Origin: Lepidodermella squamata
Taxonomy: Eukaryota; Animalia; Gastrotricha
Reading direction: 5' to 3'
NCBI GenBank assembly: GCA_047495785.1
Contig: JBLDXI010000004.1
Coordinates: 310,001 to 374,000 of the forward strand
DNA: 64,000 nt
The first letter of the stretch is position 1. Every line of letters begins with the position of its first letter. The notes under the pieces were generated by a model that did no database searches, was not told the DNA's origin, and saw nothing but the letters and a program-made list of their open reading frames with translations. Both the position numbers and the translations under genes were made by a program. Below are positions 1-63,752 of the stretch, piece by piece.

Positions 1-3000
1 TTGGCTTTGTTGTCGTAGGTTATACGCGGAGGGAAAGGCGATTCGCCTTGGGCACATCCCACCTTTTTACCCCGGCAAGTCACGGCGCCATCCGAGGCGG
101 TGCAACGCAGATGAGGAAGCTGCGGATAAAAAAAAACAAAAATTGATCGCTTCTTTTCATTCCGCTGATATAAATCACTTTTTTCAAAATGAAGCAGTAC
201 AGCAAAATGAAGTAGGATCCCAGAAACTAACTGGGGCTTATATTAAAACCCGAATTGGTGTAGCAAAGCTACCCATTTCCCTTGGTACTTCATAAGTGAA
301 ACGAAACGACAGGCAATCATTATTCCAAATTCGATTGTCAATTTTTGAATTTTGAATTCCATCAGTGCGATACACATTCAAAAATATCGAAAAATAACTC
401 ACTATGTCAGCAGCACACGTGTAGAAGTCGTCGTAACTTTGGATAAAAGCTTTGCCGTCTTCCCCGAAAGAAAATGGACTTCTCTTGATTTCAAAGAAAC
501 GCATTCAGTTAGGAGCAAACGTATGACGAGAATCCTCTTACGCCTTCTGGGCAGTAACTGTTTTTCGGCACGCAGAGTAGCAAGTTGCCGGCGTCATTTT
601 CATCATCAACGCATTGATGGTATCGGCCCTAAGAAAAAAGGTTAAACATGACACGACAGCTTTTTCACTCATAATACAAACTTGAGTGGCGTTGAGGCAC
701 AGCATCAAGCTATCGCTCAGGCTGGTCGTGCGTGTTCCGAACGGTTGGAGCTGTTTGGGAAACAGAAACGATTATTCGCATTGAAATTTGATGAATGACT
801 CACGTCGTATTGGCCATCGCCGGTTGGACATTCCTCCCGGCATGATCCACCCTCAATAGTGTCCAAGCACATTCGAATAGGCTATGAATTATCAACGTAA
901 AAGAAGTCTTGAAACTCGATTTGGTACTCACTCCTTTTCCGCAATCGTCTTTTGTCGGGTAAATCGTCGCCCCAGCGGTCTGAATCGAATTTTCATTATG
1001 GCAATCGGTAATAAAGATTGTGTACTAACCTCGCCTGAATTGCACTGCGTTGGTGCTTTCACGCAGCCTGTAAATGAAGGCTTGGACCAGTCGAAACACC
1101 GGATATGCGGATACATTTCGGGCGGGGCTAGAAATAATACATTTCGATATTTTAAAAAGTGAATTTAAATTTATTTAATTTTTTTCCGCTATCAATTCGA
1201 AATTCCGCTGGAATCATTGAGGAAATGCCGGATGACCAACGGCGTTCCGATAACTTCCGATAATAATTTCCAATGGAAAAATGACAATAGGTGAAGTGCC
1301 AACAGTGTGCAAAGTAGGATCCGGGTGCTGACGCGTTTTCCAATTTTTTCTAGGACCCAGCCAAAGGGTCCCCTGTGGTTTTGTCAACCTTCCTCTGATT
1401 GCAGTCCCCGTACTTCCCCGTACTTCGCAGTCTAGCCTTGAACCTGAACCCTAACCAAACCCAAACGCCGACCCTAAATCCGAACCCTTACTACTAACCT
1501 CAACCTCCAACCCGCGTTCCCAACGTTTTCAGCAATTATTTTGGGCAAGAAACTAGTTATGGTAATTTCGCTGCTAAAGACTGGGTTGAACATGGGTAAC
1601 GTTGTTCAAATCCAATAACTAAAAAATATCGGGGAATACAGGCCTTCAGGGGCCGAAGGCGGACCTATCCTCGCCAAGCTCAGCAAAGTTGGACATACCG
1701 TTTAAGCAATCGTTGAGAGTGCTGAATGTCGCTCCAGCTACATTTCCATTCGAACACGACGCGTTACTCGAAGCCGGTTTACATTCGACAAGAGAAAAAG
1801 TTGTGGAATCGACGCATAAAACGTGAGGTTGCTGATAGAAACGATGATTCAACTCGCAAGAATAGTAAAATCGTGGAGTTAATTAACAAACCAGGCTTGT
1901 TAAACAGTCGGCGTAGTTTCCGCCAAAATCAGTCGAAGCTCTGAAGGTTGAAACCTAGAAGATGAAAAACATGGATTCAATCTAGATTGGATGAGATAGA
2001 AAAATTTTCTCAGTCATAAAATTGGTCTAAAATTGATGGTAGCACGCGATCGAAAAAAAATGCATAAAAAAAATCTACGGCAAATTATATTAAAAGGAGC
2101 GTTATCGAAAATTAAATTCTTGAAAGAATTTCGAAAATTACCAACCAAAGTGAGAGGCGACGGGCAAGAATTTCGGCAAACGGGACCATTGGAAGACGAA
2201 CACAGCGCAGCTGGCTACGAATTTGAAAAAATCAGACATCTCGTTGGAAGTAATCTTTTAGTTTGCTCACGCCAGCAACACAATAAGCCTTGTTCATGAA
2301 TGAACCACTGTTATATTCCTATGAAAAGCAATAATCAGAATGTCAGGATTATTGACAAATATGAAGAAAAAGGCACCTGTGTCAGGTTGGCGTCAGTGCA
2401 CGGCGTAGATCGACAGCCAACAAAAGCTCGATTGCTTTTGGCGAAGCACCGGTAATTAGTCACGAAATCAGCAGTGTTGCGAACGACTTGAAAAATGTCA
2501 ATTAAATGTCAATACGTTTCAGATGCTGTAGAGAACTAACCTCGTGTAGAATCCAAGCAAGCTTGCATCGTCGCAAAAGCAGTGATCAAGGTCTGAAATT
2601 AGGTGAGCAGATTTAGGAGCAGCAGATTTAGGTGCAGTGAGCCAACAGCATAAGCCAAAAGCCATATTTTTTTGCAAAACAACACCCCTATCTCGATGAA
2701 ATTGAAATGTGTAGAAATATACATTATTAGGTTCTATGCCAATTGAGCAAACGAAAATTGAGCAACGAAAATTGAGCAAGGGCTTTTGAGCAACTAATCT
2801 CGTTTTGCTCTAAAGTCGTTTTGCTCTAATTTCGTTTGCTCTAATATCGTTGCTCAAAAGCCCTTGCTCAATTTTCGTTGCTCAATTTTCGTTTGCTCAA
2901 TTGGCATAGAACCCATTATTAATATCTGATAACGTAATTTGAGGATATTTTTTGTAAATTCTGAAGTTTCAAAATTTCAAAATTCTACCATTTCAAAATT

Positions 3001-3868
3001 TTAGAAATTTCAAAAATTTTAAATCCTACAATTTCTTAATCTCTGAAATTTCAATCAATTTCAAAATCTTTAAAATCCTTAAATTTCTGAACTTTTAAAC
3101 TCCAGCTATTTCAACATTTTTGAATTTGTAAAATCTTATCATTTCAAATTTTTTAAAATTTCAAAATCCTAAAATTTTGAAATTTAAAATTGAATTTAAA
3201 ATTTTAAAATTTTAAATTGTCAATTTACCCCGCCAGTCGGGCATGAGCTGCCTGGAATGCAGATTTGCTGAGCGTTGACGCTGCAGAGCGTTACTGGGCT
3301 GCTCTGTGATATCAAAACCACATGAGAAGAATCGAAACAACACTGGTCAATAGCGAACCATGAATCGCCTGATGACGGAACGGCATTCGTCGTACTTGGT
3401 TGCGAAATTCGTACCGATGTATTCCGCGTTCTAGTTAGAGAACATATTTTTGCGGCCGAAAATTATGAGGCATTCGAACAACTTCTTACCTGAAATTCAT
3501 CGGTACTTGAACAGCCCAAGTTGCGGGGTATGCACCGCATGTCGATTGTCTTGAAATTGAAACAGCTTCGAGCCGACTATTGAATTCGATACTGAACCTT
3601 CCTCCTAAAAGCTTGGGTAAAATAGACCTACCCCTTCTGTACAGGCAGTGAGACTTGTCAACGCAGTTCCCAACTGAAATTAAAACTAAGGGGTAACATA
3701 ATATGGAAAATTTTACCAGAATTTTACCTGGGTCTCCTCCAAGAACGAGCATGATTCTTTGCAGCCAATGAAAGAGTCGTTGAAGCGTGAGAAACAGCGC
3801 TTGTAAGTCGCTGCTTGTGAAATTGGCTCCAAATTGAGAAAAAAGATGACAGCCAGTAGAAACTTCAT
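1..3868 (-). CDS. Family gene A: secreted protein with at least 10 four-Cys repeats; runs off the left edge, CTLD presumably outside the window
   Basis: ATG at 3868; exon 1 (3868-3728) MKFLLAVIFFLNLEPISQAATYKRCFSRFNDSFIGCKESCSFLEETQ, then GT-AG micro-exons LGTALTSLTACTEG, SARSCFNFKTIDMRCIPRNLGCSSTDEFQ, VRNTADFVTNYRCFAKSNRAFVGCRSTPC, YPHIRCFDWSKPSFTGCVKAPTQC, PIRMCLDTIEGGSCREECPTG, and LPHLRCTASDGAVTCRG at the edge. Exon-for-exon homology to genes F/G. Confidence 0.82.
2730..2913. mobile_element. Palindromic MITE, Merlin-like (GG termini, 8-bp TSD), in a gene A intron
   Basis: TIR GGTTCTATGCCAATTGAGCAAACGAAAATTGAGCAAC...; direct repeat CATTATTA at 2722-2729 and 2914-2921. Confidence 0.8.
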
Positions 3869-6588: not shown

Positions 6589-8714
6589 ATGGCTGATTTA
6601 AAAGTTTACTTATCTTTGATTTTATTTTCTGTTCTGCTGACCTTGGCTCATGGACAAACGTGGCAGCGATGTTTTTCTCTTGCGAACAACAAATTTCAAC
6701 AATGCCGTCGCGTATCAAAGGGTTGCGATCCATTAACGCAATTCACGGTAACAATAATTAGCTGTAATTCAACATAGGAATTTTGGCGATAATTTGCTTA
6801 GACTGGGCCAAAGCTAAACACATCTGTACAGTGCTCTCAAGAGGTAAGTGATTAGTCTATTTATTGATGTTTCAAAATATGTCGGTGATTTTTTCAATAG
6901 AAAGCCTCGCTTTGCTACAAATTCAAGACTCTAACAACAATTTGCCGGGTTGGCCGCCAATGTATTGGGAATGAAATTTTGGTAATAATTTTTTTCGATT
7001 GCAAACTCGATTAATTATTTCATTGATATTGACATCAGGTTAAGATTTTCCAATCGAAATACCTATTGCGTGAAAATCTCGCCGATTGCGACGCGGCAGC
7101 ATTAAGTTTTGAGGCACGTTTGCCAAAATAATTTTTTTCCAACAGCATTATTGTCTTTATTTAAATTTTAAGAATCAGCCATTCAAACCGTGCTACAAAA
7201 ATTCAACCGTGCTGCTGGATACATGTGTCCCAAGAAATTTCTCGTGCCCAGCAAGAACGGTAGCAATTAATTAAATTTGAATCGAAATTTGTGAGAACTA
7301 AATCTTGTTGCTAGGTCGAAGGTCCGTGGAAAAGCAATCTTTCGCGATGCTTGAATGGTCGACGTTAGTTCAATCGGTTTCATATGAGCAATCATTTCCA
7401 GCCTCTGTGATACAGTTTCGGTGCCTGACAATGAAAAGCCGCAGATTCGGTGTTTCGATGTGAAAACGCGTGACTTCATTGCTTGCCATTTAGCCACTAC
7501 GGGTTGCCGAGCTTCAGAAACAACAAAATATTCAGGCGGTCAATTTATCAATAAATTGGTATGCATGAGAGGGGTTAGTCTTCGAAATTTTTACATATTA
7601 TTTTGAACGAATTTTCTCTGATTCTGAATTTACTTAGAATGCTGTCAAGTGTGCAGCATCGGGAGGCCTAAGCTGCTCCAATGTTTGCCCAGTCGCTTCA
7701 CGGCAGGTTAGCTAATTTCAAATCTTCAATTAATTTCACATACCACCATTTTTCCAGGGCAATCCTTACAACGAATCTTCGCAGTTCGCCTTTAATTATG
7801 CCAGCTGCTTGAATGATCTCTCTGAAGTAGGTTTTTCATGATTTTAGTGAGAGATCGCTACTGTCGGGTTGAATGTAACAGGTAATGTGTTCAAAAATGT
7901 CGATAGAAATTTATCAGAAAAATTCAGAACTCAGAATTCAAAATCAGAAAATCTTACGCCGGTACCATATTTCCTTTCATTCCATACCTAATCATTTTAT
8001 TCGTTATTTTACCAGTTTGGGTTAGGTTAGGGTTGGGTTAGGGTTGAAGGCTGGGTTTTAAAATTTGAGATTTGGTACTGATTGGAATAATCTGGAACTG
8101 AATTGAATAATTTGGCAATGATTTCATAGTATCCCAAAATTGAATCTCTTGTTACATTTTTCACGTATATTTCATTTTTTCGTTTTTTTGTAAAAACATA
8201 GCTCTTGGGGTTCGTAAGATGCCAATCATCGACTGGCAACTATACCTGCCGTCTTCGCTCACCCGGTTGCTCAGCTAACGAAGCTCAGAATCCGGCTAAT
8301 CACACCTTCGCGACTCAATGGGCATGTGACAACGTCGTGAAAACTATTCAACTTCACGTTGCTCAGCTCGACTGGTCTGCGGGCGAAGCCTACTGCGCAT
8401 CTATTTCGAAGCGAATGGCTACGATCAAAACCGATGATGATTCGTTGGTGATTGAACAGCTGTTGAGGAATGCTAGCACCACAGCAGCTTGGGTTGGGTT
8501 GAAGCTAGACAGGAGCACTGGCGAATGGCGCTGGAGCGATGGCACAGTCAATGAACCCCCATTTCGCAATCAACCATCCATCGAGGAGAACGGGTCCGTT
8601 GAATTTTGCGGCAGGAATTTTCTTGCGAATTCGAGAATGATTCTTGCGGCTGCGGATTGTAAACGAAACCAGGCTGGTGTGCTTTGCGAAGGGTTTTCTG
8701 CCGCATCAAGATGA
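6589..8714 (+). CDS. Family gene B: signal peptide, 6 four-Cys repeats, CTLD (10 exons)
   Basis: MADLKVYLSLILFSVLLTLAHG signal; exons RCFSLANNKFQQC..GC, TGPKLNTSVQC, KASLCYKFKT, NQPFKPCYK, KPQIRCFDVK, NAVKCAASGG; last exon has CTLD motifs WSAGEAYC, AWVGL, WRWSDG, VLCE; AATAAA downstream. One intron needs a GC donor at 7114. Confidence 0.85.
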
Positions 8715-24850: not shown

Positions 24851-26229
24851 ATGTCTTATTACACCAATATTTTGGTTTTGCTTATGCTGGCGTCGTGGGG
24901 CATGGCTTCAGGGAAGAAGCAGTTGAACTGGGTTCGGTGCTTCTCGAAGCAGAGCAACAAATTCACCAGCTGCGTTCTGGCTGCGGATGGTTGTGATCCA
25001 CTCAAAGAATATCAGGTTTGCCATGATTGAATTTCAAACAATAACCCTGGCCTCAAATTAATATCTCTATCGACAGGTGGGCTCCGTTTTCCGAACAACC
25101 GACGCCTGTAACACTGGGGTGAGTTTCTACGCTTGCTATATTTTTGTTAATTGTTGATCTGCTTTGGCTATAGAATGGCCGAATGTGCTACAAATACGGG
25201 GCTCTTACCACGTTTTGCGTTCCCGGAAATGTTGGCTGCAACAATGCTGGTGATATGAATGTAAGTCTAATTGACCATGGATGAAATTATTCGCAATCAT
25301 CAACTTTGCTGCAGACGTTTTGGTTCGGCGATCAGACGCAGGCTTTGAGCTTGAAATACAACCTCAACGAATGCGAGAAGAAGCGAGCTGTTTTCGATGT
25401 GAGAAACTTCTAAACCACGATAATCATTTGAATGATTGGTTTCTTCATATCATAGAAATTACAATTCCGGCGTTGTACCTCTAACAACGTCTTTAAAACA
25501 TGTGTTCCGGACCCTTACTCTTGCCCCGAAAACTGGGTTAGTCTGTCGAAGCTTCGAAAATTTGCCTAGCTTTTTTGCCTTACCCAACTAGGTCACGGAG
25601 CCAACTTTGTACTCGAATCTAACATCGTGCATGAGCAGTGGGGGCGGAACACCCCCTGTGAGTTTGCGCTGGGTCCTATTCATTCGAACTGGGTCACCGA
25701 ATATTATGTTTTACAGTCTGCCTACTTCCGTTGCGTCGGCAAAAGTGACGCAGCAATTCGTTGCGTGGCGAATACAGCTGGTTGCAACGCGGCTACTGAA
25801 CTTCGAATTCCGGCTTCTATCGAATATGCTGACCAGACCAGCTGCCAGAATGCGACTAAAAGATATTTTGTGATAAACTTCTTCGACCATGGAAGTATTG
25901 CCGCGCCGGCTTGCGTCGCTGCCAATGGTACTCTGGCTACAATCAGGTCGGACGCTGAGTTGGTTACTGCTAAAGGAGCGTTGGCGGCAAAATCAGGTCT
26001 TAACGATGCGTGGATCGGCCTCGCCCGTCAGAACAATGTGCTCAAATGGATCGATGGCTCTGATTTCATTTACATCGAAAATCAGTGGACGCTAGCGGGT
26101 GGCCCAGCAATAGAAGGCGATGCTTGTGTTATGATGATGAAGAGCACATCGCCAACCCCTGATTTTTACTACATTTTGCTTCAGTGTTCCAATACGGGAA
26201 CCTTCGCCCTATGCGAGGCGTTTTCTTGA
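24851..26229 (+). CDS. Family gene C: signal peptide, 4 four-Cys repeats, CTLD (7 exons)
   Basis: MSYYTNILVLLMLASWGMASG; exons VGSVFRTTDACNTG, NGRMCYKYG, TFWFGDQ, KLQFRRCTSNN, VTEPTLYSNLTSCMSSGGGTPP, SAYFRC...AWIGL..WIDG..ALCE. All junctions phase 0. Confidence 0.87.
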
Positions 26230-29610: not shown

Positions 29611-32600
29611 ATGGTTTGGGTTCACTGTGCTCTCCTTCTAACCCTATTGCTGGCGTCAAGTGACCCGGCTTCAGGTAAAGAATTAAACTGGGTCCGCTGC
29701 TTCTCGCAGTTCAGCAACCGATTCACCAACTGCATACCAGCCGCCGATGGCTGTAATCCACTCACCGAATACCAGGTTTGCAAGGATTTACTTGCAGTAA
29801 CATGGAGATTGTTGAATTCTTCACCAACTAGTGGGGCGGCATTTTTCGAACAACTGGCGTCTGCAACACTGGGGTTAGCTTTATTCTTCAGTTTATTTTT
29901 GCTAATTAATGCCCTGTTTTGTCTATAGAATGCCCGAATGTGCTACAAATACGAGGCTATTACTCCGTTTTGCGTACCTGGTAACATTGGCTGTAACAAC
30001 CCTGGTGATATGAATGTTAGCCTCGTTCCATTTTTGAAGTCTCAAAATCATAGACAACTCTATACAGATCGGAAACTAGCGATCTTCCTATAGTAAATAA
30101 ATTCACACCAAAACGTGAAAAAGTGGGCACGCGACACGCGACCTTCATTTTTATTCACTCACCGCCCTATCCGCCCATTGTAATTTTCCCGATTTTTAAT
30201 TATTTTCTAAAATTCCCAGAGAAAATGTTTCATTTCCCACAAATTTTAAACAAATTTTCGGGAATACTAGAAGCGCTCCCCTATCGAATGAATCCCGTCT
30301 CATGAGACGGTTTTTTTCTAACTTTTTTAAAATTATCTCAAAGTTGGTCACTTTTACGAAAAATCGCCATTTCGAGAGTCTTTCGGGACGGTAAAATTAT
30401 TCATTTAAGCCGAAAAATTCTGAGAAAAATACTATGATCTTATTCGATTTTTGCTCTATCCAACGATATAAAATTTGAGCGAATCATAATTTTTTATGAA
30501 TTTCGCGAAATTTTCGGACTTGTAATATTGGGATTTTGCGTGATAATGTTTTTCTAAAAATAGCTATTAGGTTTTTTGTAGCTATTTTTAGCCCGCTCAA
30601 AGTATTATCAAGCGAATGCAAAAAAATGAAGGTCGCGTGCCCACTTTTTCACGTTTTGGTGTGAATTTATTTACTATAGGAAGATCGCTAGTTTCCGATC
30701 TGTATAGAGTTGTCTATGCTCAAAATCTTATTTTTCTGCTTTTTCACATCGTTGAAGTAATATGCCTTTTGTATTTCAGACGTTCTGGTTCAACGATCAG
30801 AATGCGACGTTGAGTTTAAAATACAACCTCAACGAATGTGAGAAGCAACGAGCTGTTTTCGATGTAAGAACTTCCAAACCTCTGTTGACAGTGGTCGTGA
30901 TCAATTGTTGTTCAACCATCGTAGAAATCCGCGAAATTCCGGCGCTGCACCTCGAACAATGTCATCAAAACCTGCGTTCCCGATCCCTTCACTTGCCCTG
31001 AAAACTGGGTTAGTTTTGTTGAATTTTCCTATGTTGATTCAAAAACTCACTTTAATTACTCAATTATTCCTCTTCTAGATCACTGAATCGACGATTTACT
31101 CAGATTTAACGTCGTGCATAAACAGCACGGGTGAGTCAAAGATTAAAATCGGTTATTTGAAATGGCTAAGATAAATTCTCAATCTAAATATATGGAATAA
31201 GGGGCCTTTATTTTTCGGCAAATTTAATCATTAGTGAATTGAGGTATTTCCGTCAAAACAAATTTATCAGTGATTGAAAGAAAATTCCGGGAATTTTCAT
31301 TCATCAGTGCACAGCGTAATAAATTATTGAGAAAATAAAAAATAACACTAGCTATGTTTTTTTAATCACAGTCACTGTTCCGATCAGCGAGAAGCCGCAT
31401 ATCCGATGTTTCGATTCGGCAACAAGCAAATTCAGCGACTGCCGACCTCAAAGCTCTGGCTGCCTTGCTAACAATGAAACTCAGCAATATTCCAGCAAAG
31501 TCTACATCAACCGTGCATCTTGTCTGCTAGGAGTGAGATCTCAAATAGCTTTTTGCATCTTATCAGTTATTACGCTTGTTTGACAGAATGCTGTTTCGTG
31601 CAAGGATTCATCCAACCGAACGTCGTGCTACGCAGCTTGTCCCCAAGATCAAACTCAGGTACCACTCAAATGCCCGGTTTTCTCCATAATTTACAGTTTT
31701 TCTATAACAGGTTAAGCTGTTCTCGGAATCGGGCACGTTCCAGCTGAATCACGACAAATGCATCAATGACGTATCGCCTCCTGTGAGTTCACATCTTTAA
31801 ATATGTCAGGGTTCCATAATTATATGTATCCAACGCAGCTAGGTTAAATAGTTTAATAGTTTAGATGGATCATTAGTAATTTTTCGGCAATCAGACAAAT
31901 TTTGAAAGAAGCCAATTTTCCATTGATTGTCCGGCTTTTCTGATGTGCCCCTTTGGTTATATAGTTAACCTGGCTTGGCTATGAGTTTGGGGTTCTCGGC
32001 AACTCGGAAATGAATTCGCCTTAAAGAAATTTGTTTTAGCAGTTATAACTAGTGAAAAATGGGTGTAAACGAATTCTACTTATTTACATAGAAACTTGCT
32101 AAAATTATAATTTGATAATATCGAAAATTCCGGCTTGCAAAATCCGGTTATCAAGATGGGTAGCGGTTTCATCAACCGCCTCTCATAGTGGGCTGGTGGA
32201 TTAACCAAAAAAACAATAAACATATTGTTATTTGCGGGCTCGTTCCCTTGTTTTCGTAGCCGTTGTGTTATGCGCAATTGTTGAATAATTGCTCTTTAAA
32301 TTCCGAAATTTCAGGCCAAAAAGTGCTCATACATTCGTTTTTCAAGCATTTCCATTTAGCTAAATCTGAACAAAATGTAGATCAATTAAGATTGGGTGGG
32401 CTCAGTCAAAGACCGCAAGGGAGACGCTTATATCTCGATTTTCCTTCTTCCAACCAGTTCTGCTATTTTACTTTGCTCTCAGCTTTTTTGACGACGATGC
32501 TATCGACCATTGCGCAATGGCTATGTAATGGTTAGCATTAAAGCGGGCTATGGTTTTTGCGATCGCTACAAATCTTAATTTTGACAAATAATGTGGGTTG

Positions 32601-33695
32601 TCTGCAAAAAGAGCAAGCGAAAAGCAGCAAAACGAGAGGCCATTTTTCTGATCTTGAATCATGGGAGATCTTAGCAGAACGTTGCAGATTAACAACATTG
32701 TGGAACCACTGGCGAGTTGAACTTAGGCGCGCACGCTGATTGGTCAATTTATCGTTTATACGGCATTGGTCGCTCTCACCCGGCAAAACTCCGGAGTGGA
32801 ACAATTTAGTCGTGCGATCCACTGATAAATTATTTTATATTTATGCAAAAATGATCTTGCCACACCCTCTGCACGTTTCCATTGACCACGAGCGTAAACT
32901 CCATGTTAATCGTGTTAAATTGCTGCGGCAAAAAACACTTGTTGTCAAAAATCTTATGGATCGCACGACAGAACGTTTCATCCAGGAGTCAGAGCGACGA
33001 TCGATTGACCAATCAGCGCGCGCTTTGGATTGGACTTTCAAGTGGTCACACAATGTATGATTCATTTTATACGAGACTAACGGGGGGGGGGGGGGGGGGG
33101 GGGAAGAGGGGCGTGATGTGAGCGAGCACTTTATTATCACCTGGCTTTATTACTATCATTTTAACCAAAGCCGGCTGGGTATTTCCGCTGCGTCGACAAC
33201 AGCGATGGCGCTGTTAATTGCGTCGCCGAGTCGGCAGGCTGCAATGCGGCAACTCAGCTTCGAATTCCGGCTAATGTGGTCTATCCGGACGAGAACACTT
33301 GCAAGAGTGCGACCAAGAAGTACACGGGGGTGTTTAATTATCAACTCAGAGCTTATTACCTGCCCAAATGCGCCGAGATAAATGCTACATTCGCCACGAT
33401 TAGGTCTGACGCTGAGCTAGCCGCCGCTAGGCTCGTGCTCCTGCAGGCTAGCCATGCACAAGGTTCCACGGTTTATTCCACATTGGTCGCTCTCACCCGG
33501 CAAAACGGCATACTCAAATGGGATGACGGATCGAGCTTCACTTTCGACGCAACGCAATGGGTTATGGTTCCATCTGATGATGGGTGTGCTCGTTTAGTTT
33601 ACTATACTAAAGATTCACGACCGAACGATTTTTACTATTCGGTAGATGATTGTGATAATACCTATTCATACGCTATCTTATGCGAGTATTTTTAG
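29611..33695 (+). CDS. Family gene D: signal peptide, 6 four-Cys repeats, CTLD (10 exons)
   Basis: MVWVHCALLLTLLLASS; exons WGGIFRTTGVCNTG, NARMCYKY, TFWFNDQ, KSAKFRRC, ITESTIYSDLTSC, KPHIRCFDSATSK, NAVSCKDS, VKLFSESG, PAGYFRC...KWDDG..ILCEYF. Confidence 0.85.
30049..30718. mobile_element. MITE with CATAG termini and 8-bp TSD (P-element-like), in gene D intron 3
   Basis: ~85-bp TIR CATAGACAACTCTATACAGATCGG...; TSD CTCAAAAT (30041-30048 / 30719-30726). A partial related copy ends at 46824. Confidence 0.88.
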
Positions 33696-35720: not shown

Positions 35721-37943
35721 ATGGCCGCGAGCAATTGTTTGATTATCGCGATTTTCTTTGCTGCCAGTATCAGTCTTACATCGGGCCAGTATGTTCGATG
35801 CTTCTCGCTGGTCAACAACATATTTACGTCGTGTGTACCGGCCAAAAAGGGCTGCGATCCTCTTCGCGAATATCAGGTAAATCCGATATGAAACGCTTTG
35901 TCGTTGAATTTCTTGCTTCAATTTTAGTTGGGGCGAATTTTCCTACGAGCTGGCGTTTGCGGTCGCGGCGTGAGTTTTGAGGCCTAGTTCTTATCGAAGA
36001 GTGTTATCGAAAAGCGAAATTTTTTATAAATGTTGTGAAGGCCTTTTATTTCAGTTTTTTCTCATTTTTTTTTTTATTTTTAGAATGGCCGTATGTGCTA
36101 CAAATACGACTTGCTTACTCCGATTTGTGTACCTGGTACGGTTGGTTGCGGCAAACCCGGCCAAATGAGCGTGAGTGACCTTAACGTATCCTTTTGTGAT
36201 AAACTCGGGGTTTGAGCGAAGTTGAGCGTTTTACTCTTTCCCATAGAAAGTTCTCTTGAAAAAATTATTCATTTTTTAAGACTTGAATTGGAATTTTGAA
36301 ACCATGGTCGAACGTCGAACCAATTTTATTTTTCAGCTGTTTTGGTTCAACAGCTCTTCTCCTCAATTGAATTTGAGATACAACCTCAACAACTGCGAGA
36401 TGAAAAAAGCTGATTTTCCGGTAAGCGATAAATCATTGCGAAAGCATGAATCTCTATTCAAATATTCATATTCAGAATCTCCAATTCAGGCGTTGCTCGT
36501 CAAACGGCGACTTGAAAACATGCGTCCCGGACCCGTACACGTGCCCGAACAACTGGGTAAGAATTAAGCTCAGCTAATCTTCATTCATTCAATTCACTGA
36601 TTTGTTTTATTTCTGGTAAAAATCAATCGAAATTTCCCCAATTTAAAATTTAATGCTGACTTTGCTTTTCCAAAGAAAATAGAGCCGACACTGTATCTGA
36701 ATCTTTCCGCTTGTACCAATGGATCGCGTAAGTTCAAGAAAAACTCACCGTTAAAATGGTTTTTTTTATATATTTCTTTGTTTACAAAGTGAGCGTTCCT
36801 GATAGTGAGAAACCTCAAGTTCGCTGTTTTGAAAAACAGACTCGAAAATTCACCGACTGCCGCATGCGAAGTCCTGGCTGTATTCCTAACACAGAAGTAC
36901 AGCTATATCCGACTGTATTTTACAGCAATCGCGAAAACTGCCTTAAAGGAGTGAGCTTTATAAAATTGCTGATAATCTAACAAATTTTGGTTATTTTAGA
37001 AAGCTGTTCAATGCAAGGATTCATCGGATGCCAAAGGCTGCTATGCTCAGTGCCCGAAAGATCGAACGGAGGTAACTGCTTAATTAGCGTCAACATTCTC
37101 TTATAGGTTCGACTTTTCAGGTCAAGGCTTATTTGGATGATCAGCTTTTCAAAGTCAACCACGATGCATGTATCAAGGAAATAACACCTGCGAACACGGT
37201 GAGTCATCTGTTCGCTTTCATCTTAGCTTTCTTCCTTCATTTGTCGAAGTTCGGATTTTATCTGGCGCATTGGGTTTGGTTTGATTTGATTGAGGGTTCA
37301 AATCATGGATTTGATTGAGGGTTCAAATCATGGATTTGATTGAGGGTTCAAATCATGGATTTGATTGAGGGTTCAAATCATGGATTTGATTCATTAAATC
37401 AACATTAAATCAAAGGGCTGTTACATTTATTTCTGTAATTTGTAGACAGGTCTTTGGCGTTGCGTCGACAAGAGCAGTGGTGCGATAGCGTGCTGGAGCA
37501 GTACAGTGGGTTGCCATCCCACAGCCGATCTGCACATCCCTGACAACATTCTCTATCCTGACCGGGACACTTGCAGAGCCGCCAAGAAGAAGTTCATCCT
37601 GCTACCCGGGACTTTCGATCACTCTGCCGGCTCTGCAGCGTGCGAACAGGCCAATTACAGGTTCGGCACCGTGCGATTGGATGCTGAGCTGTATTTACTC
37701 AGAAGCGAGCTGAGGAAGATATCGGTCTCGCTAGCTTGGATTGGCCTGACGTATACTTCCAACTCGTTCAAATGGTTCGATGGCAGTTCTTTCAGGATTA
37801 ATGCAACGCAATGGACCAATCTGGCTGCAGCGAGAACTATGAGCTGCTTCGGCATGGTTCGCGATGCCGCAGTGAATGATTACTTGTATCAAGGAGAGGA
37901 TTGTGGCAGTAGCGCGAGCCATGCGGTTTGCGAGACATTTTGA
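35721..37943 (+). CDS. Family gene E: signal peptide, 6 four-Cys repeats, CTLD (10 exons)
   Basis: MAASNCLIIAIFFAASISLTSG; exons LGRIFLRAGVCGRG, NGRMCYKYD, LFWFNSS, NLQFRRCSS, KPQVRCFEKQ, KAVQCKDS, TGLWRCVD...AWIGL..WFDG..AVCE. Confidence 0.85.
37286..37390. repeat. 25-bp tandem repeat, about 4 copies, in a gene E intron
   Basis: Unit TGAGGGTTCAAATCATGGATTTGAT. Confidence 0.9.
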
Positions 37944-39872
37944 AAGCCTGTGATGAAAAAGATATTATTTATGATGTGAATGCCCGCGGAGGATGATGAG
38001 TAAAATCAGCATTCAATTTGATATCGATGCATTTTTCAACAGATTGGGAATTTCCAACGGATTTTCAACGGGATACAAACTTTTGAGAGCCCAATCCTTG
38101 GAGATGAGGTCCTTTCTCCATAATTTCTGAAATTCGAAAATTCTTATCGATTAGGCTTGAAGTGGAGATTGGAGATGCACGTCTAGTTTTATCGCAGCAT
38201 TTAAATATCAAGTAACTTTCCTCGCTGTAAAGCTAACCTTCGCGTGCAGGAAGACAATGGAACCCGTACGAGATAAGCCTTCTTGAATGGGTCATTCACT
38301 GGGTGATAAAACTTCGAACTTCGGTGGATATTTTAGCACATCACAGCTAGCAAGAAGTTTAGGTGTGGTGTAATAACAGAACGAAGATGCCGTTCAGGGA
38401 TTTCACTAAAAAATTCACGACTCAACACGTATTTCCAGTGATCCGACTAGGTCCAGCTCTGAGGGGGTAAATCAAGCATTTTGAGCCAAAATTTCCAAAT
38501 CAACACTCACGTTTTTCAGAAATTTTCGAACGCCAAGGGGGTTTTGTTTACCCCCCTTACCCCCGTACTCGGAGCACAGGGTATTTCCCAGAATAGCACC
38601 AAAAACACTTGCAGCTTGCAGCCTAAACAAGCTGGTAGTATTCCATCCTAAGTGTCATAGAGCGAGTAGGACCGCGAAACTGGTAGGATTACAAATTACA
38701 AAACTCGACATAAGGGTCCCCCCTTTGGGCTTTGAATGAGCTCACCGATTGCAAACGCGGCGAACGCTTTCGAAAATTCATCGGAAAAGAAATTAAGGTA
38801 AGCATGCATTTTAACTATTTAATCGATTGGCTTCACCATCATTTTCACCAAAGTTATTATTTTTTTCAGAAGAATTATGTCGACCTCAGACCTCAGACCT
38901 CAGACCTAAATTTTTAATGAACACTTATATTTCGGTATCTATATTTCAATTACATCTACATCTACCATCTACCCTACGGTGCAGTCGCTGGCAGAGTGGA
39001 GCAATCCCAGGTAATGTGCTGCGAATTTTAGTCCAAATTCTATTCGATTCTCTAGAATTTTCGCAGAAACTCTGCTTCCTACGGCAGATTTCTGCTACTG
39101 GAATGAAAGCTTGCTAAGCTGTGCCGTCTAAATTATTCCCAAAACTGAATAGTTTCCTTCATAATAGATTGCGTTGCGAAAACTCTATCACAGTGTGTTG
39201 AAAATTGGGGTTCCAAGTACTTATAGATTAGTCATGTCAAAAATATGTATAGTTACACCTGAAGCTATATTTCAGATACGGAACAGATATATAGTTAATA
39301 TTCGAATAAATATATTTTTTAAATATTAACAATATAGTTTGTGCTTAGAAAATTCAAAATAAATGAACACAATGCATTATTTATTAATAACTTGTTTTGG
39401 CCTTTGCCAAGAGAATAAGTGGAGTATAATCACATTAAATATTGATTTCACGATGCGAAAGAAAAACATAGTCAGTCGTCAGTCATGGATTTGAATAAAT
39501 GTATCAACGCTGCCAAGATTAGATAGAATATTGCTCGCAGGCGACATAACGTACTGATTCCGTGCATGCCACCAGTACTAACTTGTAATCGCCTGCCTCC
39601 TCGTCGAATTTTACGTTGACGCAAAGCTCAGTTGGCGATGGAGCAAATGCGGGCACAAAACCGTCGCTGGTATCAGGGTGCTCCGTGCCGTCTTCCCAGA
39701 CGAGCCTGTTATCCGCTGTTTTGATCAAGCCAAGCCATGCGTTGAACTTTGGCGGCTCAAACTGACCCTCCTTATTAATGATGTTGAACCTGAGTTCGCC
39801 GAAATCGGGAAATGTTTTCGGCATAGCTAGCTGACCTTTGTTGCTACGACACAGTTCGATAGCCGCACTTCG

Positions 39873-42800
39873 TTCGTGTTGCGACGTAAGGGACCGCCTG
39901 TACTAGCGCATATTTCTATATATTATTATACCGCTACATTGCGGTTGTTTACAACTGCGGAGCGGTTGGATCCCAAATTACTATCTTTGGTTCAAGGGCT
40001 ATAAAATTGCCATTAGCTGCGATTGCTATCGTGCGTTCTTGGACTCTTGGAGAGAAAAGAGAAATTCAACTTTTTCGCCTATCATTCCTATAATTCTTCA
40101 AATTTTTCTCGCTTTCTTCTGGAATTCTTCGATTGCAGATTTAACAGGTAGCAAAAACGAGCTGCCGTGACCAATGAAAAACTATTATTATACGTGACTC
40201 GGTGCCGTAAATCTTTATTTTCAATGCAGCGAAATAATTGAAATGAACAAAGGAAATGAAACTAAGAGAACAATTCATCACACTTTGTTTAACAGAAATG
40301 GCGATAACAGGTTGAATATATCGAAAGAGCCAGCACTCTGCAATAGTATAGTAGCGACCTTACGCCGTAATTTTCCATTTCCGATTCCCGATCCATATCC
40401 AATATCCAATCTTTATCCAATCAGCTATAACTCAAGTGCCGAATTGGAGTAAAAGTTGGAGTATAATAATCCTAATCAACAATGCAGAATTTAAAATTTA
40501 ACACAGCAGCTAATAGGATGTACTTTACTACTTTAATAGCTGCGAGAGATATTGCAATAAGATTTTAATGAATTATTATTACGTATTATAGAAACGAGCC
40601 ATTCTAAATTAAAAGTTCCTCTGATTTCTACGAAAAAGTATAGAATGATATTCATGCACATGTAATATTATTGAAAGTAGATCTCGCCCCTGGAAGTTTT
40701 GGCGGATAAATCTTTGAATTAGGAAACAAGAGGTCTTCAAAGTTTTCTGAAAATGTATCACTTAAAACCGAAATGAACTAACAATTTTCGTTGACGGCGA
40801 AACTCCATTGGTTAACTAATTAACTAAGTAACGATAACTATATTGATAAGCCCCAGAAATGGCTTAGCGTCGTTGAATAACTCTGATTTGGGCATGTTTA
40901 CGTCAGGGACAAGTAAAAGGTGATAGCAGAGTTTTTATGTGAACGAAGACGGAAGCAAACTTGTCACCCGTCAACTGTCTGTAACTGACGTGAACAAGCC
41001 CAAATCTGAGTTGTATTCAACGACGCTAACGACTACGGTATGACTACGGCGCAGTGATGGCGGTTCATTCTGCTTTGACTGCTTTGGTTTAGCTTTTTTC
41101 TTCCATTTAAAATGTCTACATCTATTGGATACCAATTAAGTGTTAAATTTCAATACCTAGAGCAGATCAGATTTGTCTCCAAAAAGCTGCGCTTTGATTT
41201 AGGATCTAGCCTTGACAAGCAGAACAAACCGCTCCATTGCTCCAGAAATCTACCCGTAAACCGTTCTCATCGCAAAGTACGCGCCACTTATTTGCCTTCA
41301 ATTACTCTGAAACTCTGAAACAGTGTGGTCCACGGCCGGAAAATGGCGAGTCACCAACCGGAGTCAAAATTGGGCCAAAGAGTCAAAACCATTCAAACGC
41401 CGATAAACCACGTCTAAATATCACTCCAATTCCCGTTCTAGCTCGAAAATTGCTCTCGCTATATTCACCTGTCGCTGCAACTTTTCGGGGGGTTCGACTG
41501 GTTTGTAACAAAATTCGTCATTTTTGCGCCTTTGTAACTTGTAGAAAAATAGCTCCCTGCGAGCAAAGCGAGCTTCAGCTGAGGATATTTCTTCGACTTT
41601 TTGGACTTTTTTGATGAGTGTGGAGTCAAAGCATCTCATTTTGGAGTCAAACTCAGAGCCGGAGTCAAGTTTAGCTAGGTTATTTGTGACTCTTTCCGGA
41701 GTCAAGCTCGGCTTAGTAATAATCGGAGTCACACATGAGTAAAAAAAATCCCAAAAGAGTCAAAATGGTTTGGGAGTCACACTTTGGACCACACAGCCCT
41801 GAAAGTTATTCTGCATTCTCGCCATTAGATTTAAGTGCCGTAAGCATTCCTGATTGACCAAATTATAGTTAAGATTCCAGCTAAAATGATCAAGTGGATG
41901 CGCATTGTAAATTATACTTCTGCGCATGATTGCTTTCTTTGATAACTACTGTTAGTCCGTGGCATTTTGCTCTTTGGCCGTCGGTTCAACACCATCAGAC
42001 TAAATGTGACGTACTATTTCATTAAGAAGTCCGCGCAAAAATCGTGAATCCCAAACTCAAATGGTGGGTCACGTTTTGTCGTATCATGCCAAGCGAGTTG
42101 CATGTCAAGCATTTCTCGAATACAGCGGTTTCGTTGCTAATTGCTAATCATCAATCATCGCTAAATCGCTAACCAGATCACATTACCAAGGCAATCCGCT
42201 ATCTTTCTTAGGATACATGGATACAAGTCATACTAGCAATTCTCGAATGCTACCAACTTCGTAAACTTTGGGTGATTCTACTATTGACCTCATGTGGCTG
42301 CGAGCTGCGAATCTGCTTCAGCGATTCCGCGAGCTTCGCGCAAGGTTATAGTTCAGTTTGTCGCAACAGCTCAACTGCTCATATTTGATAAAATATGAAA
42401 TGCGATTAGAAAAATACGTGATCGCTTTTTCATGCAATAAAATTTAAGCCGAAATGCCTGCGAGCTGCGAGATAATGGAGAAGGATAACCACTAAATAGT
42501 TTATAACTAATCGCGTAATAAGTGCTCTCTTGGCATTTTCATGATAGTAGAAAAATTGGCTCATAGTCCATACTTCCGTAATATGCATTTTTCGTGATGA
42601 TAACTGCATGGGTCGCATAAAATTATGCTCCGGGAATGGGAAACTAAAAAGTAAGCCCATTCGAACGCAGACTCTGGTCATGTTTGAACAATAAGTGGTG
42701 GATAGTCATGGTTCAACGTCACTATACAGAGAGAGTGCGAGAGAGAGACAGAGACTTTACCCTATCAGTTTACCCTATGGATATTGATAGAATTGATAGA

Positions 42801-43137
42801 ATTGAATAACAAAAATTATATTATATATTATAATTATAAAATTGATAGAATTATCCTAGACTACGCTCGAAGGGAACGAAGGTGAAATCAAGAAGAGGAG
42901 GATAAATTTGGTTGATCTTAAGAATTTAGCCATGATAACGGAGAAATTGTCTGAAGCGTTTGTGCGTAGTACGCATTCTGCATTCTGGTAGCGTTGCAAC
43001 CGTTCGGTATCGGATGCGCCGCAATAATGATGCTATTACCCGCAAATAAAAAGTAGCTTATATTACCAGTACCAAGTATTTTATTACAAACAGCATGGAA
43101 GTACTGCCTAACGCGGTCTCTTACGTCGCAACACGAA
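39873..43137. mobile_element. Non-autonomous TIR element inserted at CG
   Basis: 25-bp TIR TTCGTGTTGCGACGTAAG(G/A)GACCGC; empty site CTTCGCGTCAT in paralog G (~54352). Contains a nested hAT-like MITE at ~41321-41796 and a hairpin at ~40864-41029. Confidence 0.85.
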
Positions 43138-46100
43138 CGCGTCATAAAGCTTCCTCCTAAAATAATATAGTGATAATTCCTCGTGGTGTCATCGCAGGTT
43201 CGGTTGTTTGAGAAGACGGTCGACGACGGATATTGCGTTTCACCATCTAAGCAGCGGCTACGGCAGCTGAGAGTTTCGTCTGGCGCGACACAACTGTAAA
43301 ATCTGTAACGAAAAAGCAGAATCAAGCGATTGGAAATGAAGAAAAATTCTTTAAATTTCCTATTGCAATGCATTGATAAATTTGAGTAACTCAAGCTCAT
43401 TACAAATGCCTTCTCACTTTGGGGCTTATTAAAGAATAATCAGCGTGAAAGGGTAGAAACAACTTTAATTTGAACGTTTGGGTGTAATGTATACATTGTA
43501 AAAAAATCCCGCTATTTAGGGTCTTTCAATAACCCTCGCAGCCGAAATTAAGCCGAAATTAAGCAGGAATAGCCCTGCCTGTAAGGAATAGCCCTGCCTG
43601 TAAGGAATAGCCCTGCCTGTAAGCCCTTAATTATTGCCGTTAACCACCTTCGATAATTTTCAGCCCTACTCAATTTGCGCAACGAGCCCGAACCCTCGAT
43701 CGACTTTTCTACCTTTCTACAAAAACGCACAAAAAACCAACAAAAATCGACAAAAACTAAAATACAAAAATAAAATAATAACATAAAACTCGAAATTATG
43801 AACTGCCTATGATAATGTTCAACTTATAAATGCTACGAGCCCTAGATAGCATGGGGGCAATATATTTTCATGCTCTAATGTCATTCTTATGTGCCTATAG
43901 CGCCGGCCGGCGGAGGGCCTATATAAATAAAACTACGACATGCTAAGCAAATAAGCCCCATCCCAGCCTTTACCTGGAAAAATAATTCGCTTCAAGGTTA
44001 ATTAGACGGTCCTATCTACGTCACATGAAATATGGAGCAGATAATAACAATTCGCGATTCGCAAAAATACTAGTTCGATGTTCACACCGATTCGGCTTAT
44101 CAATTTCCACAATAAAAAAGTAAAACGATGAGAACTCACGGGCCGGCACAAGCTTCGAATACATCGTAAGGATAAACAACCCCGTAATCATTCGCATTCG
44201 GTTTCTAGTGAAACAAAATTCAACTCAATAATATTCAGTTCGCGATTATTTTACTCGGTACCTACCGCTCCATCTGGGCACGATACCCCTTGAGGAACGC
44301 AAACCGCGGGGTAATTAGTTGTGCTATCTATGCATCGGGTGAATGGTGCCTAAGACGGCTATTGAGTTGAAGCAATTTAAAAATGAATCAAATAGCCCAC
44401 CGTATCAGCTTTATAGCAAAAACCCAAATTCTCGGATTTCGAAGATTCCGATGTACCGAAAGTGCCGAACTGAAAAAGTCAAAATGCGAAGTTCTTAATT
44501 GTGATAACAATCAGGAGGTCTTACTTCAAATTTGCCAGTTCCTGTTGGGCAGGTTTCTTTGCAGCTGCCACCTTTGAGAGAATCGTAGCACAGTTTCACG
44601 ATCTATTGTACCGCAAGTACCAAGAATAAAAGATGTTTGCCTGTAGGTATTTCGATAATCTCACCCCAGGTTCAACCTCAGCAACTTGCTCACATATCGC
44701 GAATTTCGACGTGCCATTGCAAAAAATCGGGTCGTAACGGAAAGACTGATAAAGCAAATCATAAACCATGACGACGCAAACATCGATTGGGTGGTTATAG
44801 ATGGAATCAATCTGCTCTTCACCTTCTTCAGTTGGTGCAAGGGCAGCAGTCCAGTGCTTATAGTCGAAAGTATAAGTAGTTTCGTCGTCCCAAAACACCG
44901 ATCCATTAGCGTATTTTGTCAAACCAACCCACGCTGTGAAACGGCCTCGTCCCATGGTGGCCTGCGACACTGCGTACGCGCTAGCTGCTTGCATCACTTC
45001 GAAGTCGCCCTCGGCCTTCATCATCGCTAGTCTGGCGTCGTTAACGGTGCACAGCTCAGAAGCATCGTTCACTGTCAAGTCGACCGATCCTCCGTAAACG
45101 AAAAACTGCCTCTTCGCTTGTTGGCACTTGGACAGGGATGAGAACGTAACCGTGTCTGGGTTGCGTGTTTCAGTCGGTAGGCAGCTGCCTGTTCGGCAGT
45201 TGACGGATCCGTCCGAAGCTTCACACCTTAAATACCTAAAAAAAATGGAAAAATACAGATTAAATTCAGCAAAGAAATTTGAAATAGGTAATCTACTATA
45301 CTACTACGATATTTTTATACTGGTATGCATGTCATTGTCTTTTTCCTAATTTCCTAACTTTCTTTGTTGATATCTACATAATGACCTCTTCACGTCGAAT
45401 CTAATTGTACTAATCATGCTTCTTTTTCAGCTGAGCTGTCCTACATCCCTTGGATATTAATGCTCATAAATAAATAATAAATAAAATTGGAATTGGGATC
45501 ATTTAACGGAGTGCCCTGAAAATGAGTCGAAGAAACGGGGGGGAAAATCCGCACATTATTCACTACACTTATACTGCCCTAATTGACTCTGTCCCACAAT
45601 TACATTTTTTGTTTTCGCTAACATTGTCGAGCTGCCTTCTGTTGGGTGTAACAGCTTTAAAATAAATAAATAAATACAAAATCGAAAAGGTATTGTGATC
45701 GGAATTCTTCAGTGTTAAGAAAAAGCGTACAAAGTATAAAGTTATATCATCGACTTCTCATTATCCCGAATTCTGAAGCGGATGTTTCTGAACTTTGGTA
45801 CTAGAAATCCTCAAGAAATGCTTACAGGCAAAGTCTAGGAATGTTGACTTGGTAAAATTCTTATGTAGCTAGTTCTTCTTCAGATAACAAAAAGTGACCA
45901 ATGGGTCCAATTTACTGGACAAATTTTATATTGCCGCATAGAGAAAATTCTGATCGTGGATGAAATGATTTTTCTGAAATTTTCAAAAAATTTTATAAAG
46001 ACGTTTACCGTCCTGAAAGACTCTTGAAATGGCGATATTTCGTAAAATTGACCAATTTCAAGAAACTTTAAAAAAATTTAGAAATAAACCGTATCGTGAG

Positions 46101-49754: not shown

Positions 49755-49769
49755 TATGTGGCGCTACTG

Positions 49770-62730: not shown

Positions 62731-63752
62731 GCCCTCCGGGCAGAGTCTGTCTTTCGGCACGCAGAATAGCAATATCTCATTTGATTCATAATTGTTTACG
62801 CATTTAAGGTGTTGACCCTAAGAAAAAAAGGCGAAAATTGTCCTGGCTTCTTCCAACTATGCATGACGCCATATCATCTCTCGATAACTCACCACAAAAT
62901 CGGCAGTGTTGCGAACGACTTGAAAAAAGGGAAATTCAATGCTGTGCTGTTCTAGATGCTGTAGAACCATAGATAATAATAAAGATCGGAAGCTTACGAT
63001 CCTGCCATAGTGTCAAAATTTTAGGGTGCAAAGGTCACAATGTGCAAAGCCACATTTTTGTGCGTTTTATTTGAGCCATGTGCGCCTAGCTAAATGCATG
63101 TAAAATCGACCCATTTTTAAATTGATTTTTTGAAAAACGTCATTTTTCTGAATTTTTGATAATTTTTATCCTAGTACAACTTTTTCCGCTCTTTCAAACG
63201 AGACCAGGCTCGACTTCCTAGGACCTTTGCAAGGCCACATAGATATTCGCAAAGTAGGCCACAAAATCACGAAGATCGACGGGAATAAAAGTTATATATT
63301 TCGATAGCTTAGCCCATCCTGGTAAAGAAAATATTTTTTCTGAAATTTTCTGATCAAATTTTAACAATTTTTTCCGCCCCGACATAATCGACAAATTTCG
63401 ATCTTCGCAATTTTGTGACCTACTTTGCGAATATCTAGATGGCCTTGAAGTCGAGCCTGGTCTCGTTTGAAAGAGCGGAAAAAGTTGTACTAGGATAAAA
63501 ATTATCAAAAATTCAGAAAAATGACGTTTTTCAAAAAATCAATTTAAAAATGGGTCGATTTTACATGCATTTAGCTAGGCGCACATGGCTCAAATAATAC
63601 GAACAAAACTGTGGCTTTGCACATGGTGACCTTTGCACTCTAAAATTGTGACACTATGGCAGGATCGTAAGCTTCCGATCTTTATTATTATCTATGTGTA
63701 GAACTAACATCGTGTAAAATCCAAGCATCGTGGCAAAAGCAGTGATTGTAGT
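62731..63752 (-). pseudogene. Fragment of a gene A-like paralog (H)
   Basis: Exons TTITAFATM (8-nt deletion versus gene A gives a frameshift), VRNTADFV, and GQHLKCVNNYESNEILLFCVPKDRLCPEG (homolog of gene A GRYHQCVDD..LCVPKNSYCPEG). Confidence 0.7.
62968..63696. mobile_element. Foldback MITE with CATAG termini and 8-bp TSD (P-element-like)
   Basis: TIR of about 250 bp beginning CATAGATAATAATAAAGATCGG; TSD TGTAGAAC (62960-62967 / 63697-63704). The homologous gene A intron at ~2525 lacks it. Confidence 0.9.

Follow-up and report, generated by a model that had tools for sequence, protein, structure and literature searches.

We describe here a family of modular genes in a 64,000-nucleotide stretch of the genome of the gastrotrich Lepidodermella squamata (assembly GCA_047495785.1, contig JBLDXI010000004.1, positions 310,001 to 374,000), referred to throughout as the window. 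The stretch holds seven paralogous genes together with exon fragments, which share a layout of a signal peptide, modules of about 45 residues with four cysteines, and C-type lectin-like domains (CTLDs), such that four to ten modules lie N-terminal to one or two CTLDs. The modules have kept their sequence across the family and the CTLDs vary in a few patches. We give about an even chance to the reading that these genes encode soluble recognition proteins, in which a conserved disulfide-bonded stalk would carry variable lectin-like heads.

The window is eukaryotic DNA with a G+C content of about 40%. Long open reading frames (ORFs) are scarce in it, and the ORF list shows signal-peptide-like starts followed by an R-C-F motif as well as eight lectin-domain-like ORFs. 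A six-frame scan with the patterns R-C-[FY]-x-C-x-C and C-x(7-11)-C-x(2-7)-C detected seven ordered series of motifs, three on the minus strand and four on the plus strand. Gene models were obtained by reading each series with candidate acceptor and donor sites marked, and the genes were named A to G by position. This exon reading bore out nearly every point of a first-pass annotation of the same DNA, recovering its seven paralogs, with exon fragments besides, and the architectures given there for genes B to G; for gene A at least ten repeats had been claimed, and we find ten, with a CTLD in a last exon that reaches beyond the window. The models and fragments are as follows.

1..3868 and past the window start, minus strand: gene A; signal peptide and repeats 1-10, from exon reading with AG/GT marks and three-cysteine motifs.
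6589..8714, plus strand: gene B; signal peptide, then six repeats, as counted by exon homology, and a CTLD.
9256-9306, plus strand: solitary three-cysteine exon of the repeat-3 type, a gene fragment from the cysteine-pattern scan.
24851..26229, plus strand: gene C; 7 exons, 345 amino acids; four repeats, then a CTLD.
28803-28862, minus strand: repeat-1-like remnant (RCFSK... motif) between C and D, from the motif scan.
29611..33695, plus strand: gene D; 10 exons, 441 amino acids; six repeats, then a CTLD.
29611-29775, 29832-29873, 29929-30015, 30780-30863 and 30925-31008, plus strand: exons 1-5 of gene D.
31079-31130, 31372-31532, 31587-31658, 31717-31770 and 33171-33692, plus strand: exons 6-10 of gene D.
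35721..37943, plus strand: gene E; 10 exons, 428 amino acids; six repeats, then a CTLD.
52123 down to 39519, minus strand: gene F; six repeats, a CTLD (45240-44680), three repeats and a second CTLD.
43307-43138 and 39872-39519, minus strand: the two pieces of the last CTLD exon of gene F.
60049 down to 54003, minus strand: gene G; six repeats, a CTLD (56228-55662), three repeats and a second CTLD (54518-54003).
31372-31532 (D), 7416-7573 (B) and 36790-36950 (E), plus strand: repeat 4 as one exon with a complete four-cysteine module.
33171-33695 (D), 8202-8714 (B), 25717-26229 (C) and 37446-37943 (E), plus strand: exon holding repeat 6 and the CTLD.
L072:1089-1247, plus strand: degenerate family exon 1 (signal peptide and repeat 1) that has lost its first cysteine.

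The last exon of gene A (repeat 10 and CTLD) starts at about 116, runs off the window and ends about 400 bases upstream, where the remainder of repeat 10 and the CTLD lies at L072:1595-2083 on the minus strand. The degenerate exon-1 fragment stands about 750-900 bases before the window start, beside the end of gene A. Gene G, in which every large exon is open, is a recent duplicate of gene F, and the introns of F exceed those of G in size.

Exon-intron structure is closely shared among the paralogs. In C, D and E, AG precedes and GT follows every exon, and the assembled frames are free of internal stops; exon sizes are kept across paralogs (about 160, 42, 87, 84, 81-84, 52, 161, 72 and 54, then about 500 nucleotides), and introns are mostly 49-73 nucleotides long with GT-AG splice sites. 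The introns of gene C are all GT-AG, in phase 0 and 54-61 nucleotides long. In D and E, phase 0 holds for 8 of 9 introns and the junction between repeats 3 and 4 is in phase 1, with a donor and acceptor that match in B, D and E. Repeats 1, 2, 3 and 5 of D and E are each encoded by a three-cysteine exon plus a one-cysteine exon, repeat 4 lies whole in one exon and repeat 6 is encoded together with the CTLD; the exon tables bear out the proposal of mostly split repeats and mostly phase-0 introns. Cysteine spacing along gene D is C-10-C-6-C-17-C, C-9-C-6-C-26-C and C-8-C-6-C-16-C for repeats 1-3, then C-10-C-6-C-19-C, C-8-C-3-C-20-C and C-9-C-6-C-19-C for repeats 4-6, followed by the four cysteines of the CTLD.

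Two genes depart from this pattern. The one-cysteine exon of repeat 2 in gene B (about 7042-7113) has no in-frame donor, as only phase-1 donors are present and the next exon requires phase 0; gene B either skips this exon, giving 408 amino acids with an odd 27 cysteines, or is decaying. In gene F, a 3.27-kb transposon at 39871..43139 interrupts the last CTLD exon. The breakpoints of the F-to-G alignment fall at 43138 and 39872, and terminal inverted repeats of 27 nucleotides (96% complementary) lie exactly there; the internal ORFs of the transposon are short and it may be non-autonomous. Intron 3 of gene G (1309 nucleotides) contains a 272-amino-acid ORF on the opposite strand (58702-59520, plus) with no Pfam match at E 0.01. 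The counterpart intron in F is far shorter, at an estimated 300 nucleotides or so, and the ORF is probably an inserted element.

Whether the predicted exons are joined in transcripts, a check proposed in the first-pass annotation, was addressed with the two public runs that cover the region, a DNA run (X2) and a run whose 'RNA?' label is a guess (X1). These were compared in bins over a 6-kb stretch with exons of C and D. X2 was present in every bin and X1 was confined to bins holding C and D exons, being zero over 26300-27499 and 27900-29499 and at trace level (0.9-1.6) over 27500-27899. One X1 joint (29872/3 to 29929) links exon 2 of D to exon 3, the one extra letter being synonymous in the last codon. 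At a second joint, the thirty letters following 30015 spell the start of D exon 4 (T-F-W-F-N-D-Q-N-A-T; exon at 30780). The third is provided by contigs ending at 25398, whose unaligned continuation spells the start of C exon 5 (K-L-Q-F-R-R-C-T-S-N; exon at 25456) and so links it to exon 4. All three joints agree to the base with the gene models, and cDNA-like molecules therefore join the micro-exons. No alternative splicing was seen in the X1 contigs over the exons of C and D.

The repeated unit was further characterized as a potential domain. Alignment shows four invariant cysteines, an arginine before the first and a glycine before the third. A profile of 47 units gave 27 matches in the six-frame translation of the window (independent E <0.05), the best of which (5e-27) was repeat 4 of gene D at 31372..31532. 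An AlphaFold2 model of this unit, made with the 47-sequence alignment, reached a predicted local distance difference test (pLDDT) score of 89.8 and consists of a beta-hairpin (residues 7-12 and 18-23), two short bridges and a C-terminal helix.

The suggestion that the repeat corresponds to no named domain has held up in every library searched. Of the two outcomes that would have counted against the first-pass annotation, exons left unjoined in transcripts and a repeat from an already described family, neither was observed. Among 17 exon translations compared with Pfam-A at E up to 10, the module had no match except trivial ones (CHCH 0.11, beta-defensin 0.035, Pex26 0.22, TMEM174 0.081), all far below cut-offs, and it fits no named cysteine-rich domain of Pfam-A such as EGF, sushi/CCP, Kazal, Kunitz, TSP1, FN1/FN2 or ShK. 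The module profile had zero matches at E up to 10 among PDB sequences, and four weak matches among 1.84 billion representative proteins, two of which were inspected and are unrelated repeat proteins. A word-based protein search with the exon of repeat 6 and CTLD gave no match, this search covering only proteins of 96-304 amino acids such that full-length relatives may escape it, and a sequence-feature protein atlas returned zero entries for the module and generic CTLD clusters only for the CTLD exon. A one-module query of metagenome contigs found a single locus, a high-GC bacterial contig that we regard as a chance match. CHCH (twin Cx9C) and defensin-like identities were rejected on the Pfam and structural searches, and a Kunitz-type fold on the number of cysteines (four versus six) and the absence of any Kunitz entry from the Foldseek, VIA-align and atlas results.

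Structural comparisons of the model were similarly devoid of significant relatives: Foldseek gave no match in the PDB at E up to 0.001, and the highest Z in an exhaustive VIA-align search over 48,161 chains was 4.5. Bacterial MbtH-like proteins head all three structural searches, with a root-mean-square deviation of 1.6-1.7 Å over 43 residues, Z of 4.4-4.5, a TM score of about 0.64 by query, identity of 9-13% and Foldseek E >1. In shape they come closest to the modelled module, having an antiparallel beta-sheet and then a helix. Guidance for such searches is that a Z under 8 may mean only a common arrangement, and the MbtH-like proteins of non-ribosomal peptide synthetases, unlike the proteins predicted here, are cytoplasmic partners of adenylation domains, bacterial and without disulfides; the likeness of the model is thus most likely one of simple topology and not of kinship. 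Membership of the MbtH-like family (PF03621) was rejected given the lack of a Pfam match, the Z of at most 4.5, the low identity and the signal peptides of the proteins described here. Within these tests the module appears to be an unnamed domain, its short length limiting search power such that a very distant kinship is possible.

The heads, by comparison, belong to a named class. Lectin_C of Pfam recognises five of the eight CTLD exons tested above its curated cut-off of 22.6 bits (B 8202-8714 at 35.1, C at 27.2, E at 27.5, the first CTLD of F at 26.6 and the second CTLD of G at 23.4, a range of 23.4-35.1 bits); one other scores 19.7 bits and two have no match at E 0.01. The AlphaFold2 model of repeat 6 and CTLD from gene D, built with 24 paralogs, has a pLDDT above 90 over the CTLD and gave 198 Foldseek matches in the PDB at E up to 0.001, with E down to 4e-6. 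The 50 best matches are all of CTLD type and include CD23, dectin-2, CLEC9A, the seventh CTLD of PLA2R and rhodocetin. Four framework cysteines and a WIGL-type core are present; in the 24-paralog alignment C67 and C171 are kept in every sequence, C139 and C161 in at least 90%, and the core reads W-I/V-A/G-L. The assembled D and C proteins contain no EPN, QPD, EPD, QPN or WND, and the loop following a conserved WDDGS is short and variable among paralogs. The heads are genuine CTLDs and, because EPN, QPD and WND are absent and this loop is short, they are not classical calcium-dependent carbohydrate-recognition domains.

Snake-venom C-type lectin-like proteins also lack sugar binding, and we considered whether the family might encode secreted toxins or effectors directed at prey, predators or competitors. 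Such a role would fit secreted, cysteine-rich proteins with non-canonical CTLDs from a multigene family of symmetric small exons, and rhodocetin is among the best structural matches, although it ranks no better than many immune CTLDs. Venom lectins are compact, whereas these proteins are large (345-441 amino acids or more) and have long stalks, and nothing points to a venom apparatus, which leaves this idea as a faint prospect.

As whole proteins, the assembled products open with a hydrophobic signal, are free of hydrophobic spans thereafter and end a few residues at most beyond the CTLD, in agreement with the secreted modular family first proposed. They contain 3-5 N-glycosylation sequons each and, with the signal peptide removed, even numbers of cysteines (28 in D and 20 in C). 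These features suggest secreted, glycosylated, disulfide-bonded rods. A rod of this kind might instead belong to structural extracellular material, such as a matrix, an adhesive, a tube or house, or a biomineral matrix, in which the modules would be mechanical and the CTLDs would bind matrix or mineral. CTLD-containing matrix proteins are known in sea-urchin spicules and mollusc shells, and the literature has tandem cysteine-rich modules in structural fibres as well as CTLDs in biomineral matrices. Highly conserved, ordered and disulfide-rich modules would suit a structural rod, as would CTLDs without sugar-binding motifs. The assembled proteins have, however, no low-complexity, Gly/Pro/Ser-rich or acidic mineral-binding regions, and near-neutral change concentrated in CTLD patches across hundreds of paralogs (see below) would be unusual for structural material. 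We therefore regard a structural role as unlikely.

The extent of the family was examined in the whole assembly, which comprises 121 Mb in 151 contigs, the window lying on a contig of 2.95 Mb. A genome profile search with 11 single-exon units from the window gave 942 first-look candidates, of which 150 were scored; all 150 matched at E ≤5e-12 and an internal stop was present in just one. The window's contig holds 93 of the 150, spread from 40 kb to 2.9 Mb, and a second contig of 0.93 Mb (C64) holds 32, such that the two together account for 83%. Genome-wide, Pfam Lectin_C gave 774 first-look candidates. Module types run in a fixed order along the genes. Repeat-4 units from 40 places are near-identical, including a conserved N-E-T sequon, and among exons of repeat 6 and CTLD the greatest differences are found in a few stretches of the CTLD. 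As far as sequence comparison can tell, this is a large, lineage-restricted family of at least 150 units, whose module was seen in no other organism searched.

Some of these copies are identical. Several matches on the second contig share E-values with matches at 1.19-1.50 Mb of the window's contig. Elsewhere on the window's contig, members with identical proteins occur in inverted orientation about 50 kb apart (466939/527425 and 478647/519660). Either the region has undergone a large inverted duplication and the cluster exists twice, or these identities reflect an uncollapsed haplotype. Part of the family count therefore consists of recent large duplications or of an uncollapsed second haplotype.

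Evolutionary rates differ between stalk and head. For 20 paralogous exons of repeat 6 and CTLD, the Nei-Gojobori ratio of non-synonymous to synonymous change (dN/dS) was 0.28 in the repeat and about 0.5 in the CTLD, and for the recent pair F and G it was 0.2 in the repeat versus 1.1-1.25 in the CTLD. A sliding window over closer pairs placed pN/pS above 1 in three places (the segment right after the repeat, from strand 1 into helix 1; the last part of helix 2; and the loop that follows W-D-D-G-S...Q-W), with the framework at 0.1-0.4. Tree-based counting over 43 paralogs gave a global ratio of 0.66, with 0.27-0.5 in the repeat and 0.95-1.3 in patches of the CTLD. Significant conservation was detected at 53 sites of the 199-column alignment of repeat 6 and CTLD, including 24 in the module's 51 columns, and a nominal excess of amino-acid change at only two sites (p<0.05, uncorrected for multiple testing). 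Overall, the stalk has been conserved, whereas the head contains patches that change rapidly, at close to the neutral rate. This pattern fits relaxed or diversifying evolution of the heads, and diversifying selection on them is plausible. Hence the description of the family as rapidly diversifying applies to patches of the CTLD (about 1.0-1.3, with the two nominal sites) and fails for the modules, which are conserved (0.27-0.5). Homogenization of the stalk by gene conversion was also considered, given that pairwise dS is lower in the module, but tree-based synonymous counts are only slightly lower and no claim is made.

The same figures bear on whether the family could mostly have arisen as a side effect of segmental duplication in unstable DNA, with many copies decaying and little function. 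The unusable exon of B, the transposon in F and the fragments between genes would be expected under such a process, as would identical inverted copies and second-contig copies if these represent recent large duplications or uncollapsed haplotypes. Opposed to this are the near absence of stop codons from the best module matches, the clear purifying selection at the 53 sites and the observation that exons are transcribed and spliced. We consider this explanation very improbable.

Variable heads on a conserved stalk, and the divergence of the F and G CTLDs soon after duplication, could alternatively reflect self/non-self or gamete recognition, with clustered variable paralogs conferring individual or species specificity in allorecognition or sperm-egg binding. 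Concentration of 93 of the 150 best matches on one contig, and of 32 on a possible second haplotype, would be compatible with such a system. The assembled proteins show no transmembrane anchor or other sign of display at a cell surface, and known allorecognition systems usually consist of a few highly polymorphic genes and not of hundreds of paralogs. This possibility is, in our view, quite improbable.

Under the soluble-recognition reading, each module would presumably be held by two disulfides, and the conserved modules would form a stiff, glycosylated stalk that gives reach and might dock to a common partner or permit multimers. The CTLD heads, which vary in a small number of surface patches, would recognise diverse targets, for example the surfaces of microbes or foreign cells, and would most likely do so with no canonical calcium-dependent sugar site. 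The analysis establishes the gene models, their splicing and domain content, the predicted folds, the size and clustering of the family and its pattern of conservation; that the proteins are secreted, disulfide-bonded and glycosylated, that they bind ligands through the variable patches and that they have any immune role are predictions.

Several considerations weigh against this interpretation. The recognition role is deduced from architecture, and 'lectin' activity is not to be assumed when the canonical sugar-binding motifs are absent. Positive selection is not established, and gappy alignment of loops can inflate amino-acid changes. The splice evidence consists of assembled contigs from a run of guessed RNA status, many of which derive from paralogs with 90-95% identity, and these contigs carry no information on the level or tissue of expression. 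Of the seven genes, B and F look damaged. Finally, no published description of a module-plus-CTLD architecture was found in the literature searched, and one may exist elsewhere under another name.

Comparison with described systems indicates that the partner domain is new and that the layout, a CTLD head on a stalk of repeats in clustered families, is already familiar. CREPs and FREPs of the snail Biomphalaria have immunoglobulin-type domains before a C-type lectin or fibrinogen head, and FREPs diversify somatically. The mollusc proteins share with those described here a signal peptide, N-terminal repeats, a C-terminal lectin-type head and membership of a multigene family, but their N-terminal domains belong to the immunoglobulin superfamily whereas here the position is taken by a four-cysteine unit without a Pfam match. 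An immunoglobulin-type Pfam match was found in none of the exons scanned, and the comparison with FREPs and CREPs is an analogy of layout only. Vertebrate collectins and selectins similarly place a ligand-binding CTLD on a repetitive stalk, which in those proteins is collagen (with an alpha-helical neck in collectins) or EGF plus CCP; the proteins of the window have no collagen or coiled coil with which to trimerize, no EPN/QPD and WND sugar site and no membrane anchor. Their exon translations contain no Gly-X-Y run and comprise a signal peptide, four-cysteine modules and CTLDs only.

Expansions of CTLD genes are known from nematodes (the CLEC genes) and from bivalves, amphioxus and sea urchin (PMC10140915). 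As in the present family, these number in the hundreds, are mostly secreted and clustered, and often lack the sugar motif; they differ in having named partner domains (CUB, VWA, EGF, CCP) where here the module is unnamed. Other reports give one C-type lectin-only protein per species in sponges and 48 proteins with CTLDs in a placozoan, of which 36 are membrane receptors and 12 have no membrane span, and they find no expanded lectin families in rotifers; hundreds of CTLDs would therefore be unusual in any of those groups. Lastly, schistosome micro-exon genes also encode secreted proteins from runs of short symmetric exons, where skipping that keeps the frame is possible in principle. Exons in those genes are 6-36 nucleotides long, in contrast to the 42-87 nucleotides that encode halves of a folded cysteine module here, and the present genes differ further in having one phase-1 junction and no alternative splicing seen.

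Other features of the window and the genome were recorded alongside the family. ORFs between genes B and C (10307-12865, plus strand) encode a trypsin-type protease (GDSGGP motif) with two CCP/sushi-like stretches, as well as a signal peptide and ankyrin repeats, and may be parts of one gene; a protease with CCP near lectin genes recalls complement-like lectin-protease pairs. Two further ankyrin-repeat ORFs of 201 and 136 amino acids lie between A and B (4083-5527, minus strand). A 373-amino-acid ORF at 14994-16115 (minus strand) matches Pfam DUF4218 with 28.3 bits versus a cut-off of 27; DUF4218 is a domain of transposase-associated proteins, and the ORF is probably part of a transposon. At 20245-21177 (minus strand) a 310-amino-acid ORF combines an acidic Glu/Asp-Ser run with about six tandem Lys/Pro/Thr-rich units of about 20 amino acids (E-T-K-K-T-P-R-P...), and several frames of this DNA are open, a typical feature of coding minisatellites. 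A short tandem DNA repeat at 24103-24381, immediately before gene C, is translated as S-N-I-D-R-S-N-Y-R-L units. Genome-wide there are about four Wnt loci (contigs C24, C54, C42 and C14), three of which are largely single long frames of about 500 amino acids; mostly single-frame loci are unusual for animal Wnt genes. The presence of Wnt genes marks the genome as that of an animal. The assembly gave no match for COX1, nor any for innexins or connexins, these last two being weak negatives from searches that lacked a positive control and may overlook genes built of short exons.

A more far-reaching version of the recognition role, which we put forward tentatively and hold to be doubtful, is that the module represents a new extracellular fold limited to one poorly sampled lineage and that the hundreds of genes form its main diversified humoral repertoire. 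Exon skipping among the phase-0 micro-exons and unequal crossing-over of module triplets would, as part of this proposal, generate further combinations. If true, the family would correspond in function to FREPs, VCBPs or the 185/333 genes of sea urchins.

Expansion of secreted lectin-like proteins within single lineages is an apparent route by which many invertebrates reach specific recognition without antibodies, and earlier systems (FREPs, VCBPs, 185/333 and the nematode CLECs) each altered views of innate immunity. The family described here offers a compact, confidently modelled cysteine domain without relatives in very large sequence and structure libraries, and a genomic super-cluster that takes up most of a 2.95-Mb contig, with further copies on one of 0.93 Mb. 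Should the proteins prove structural or reproductive, the domain and the scale of its expansion would still need explaining. The family presents a concrete, testable candidate for a recognition repertoire in an animal that has no described one and, for structural biology, what appears to be a new small domain.

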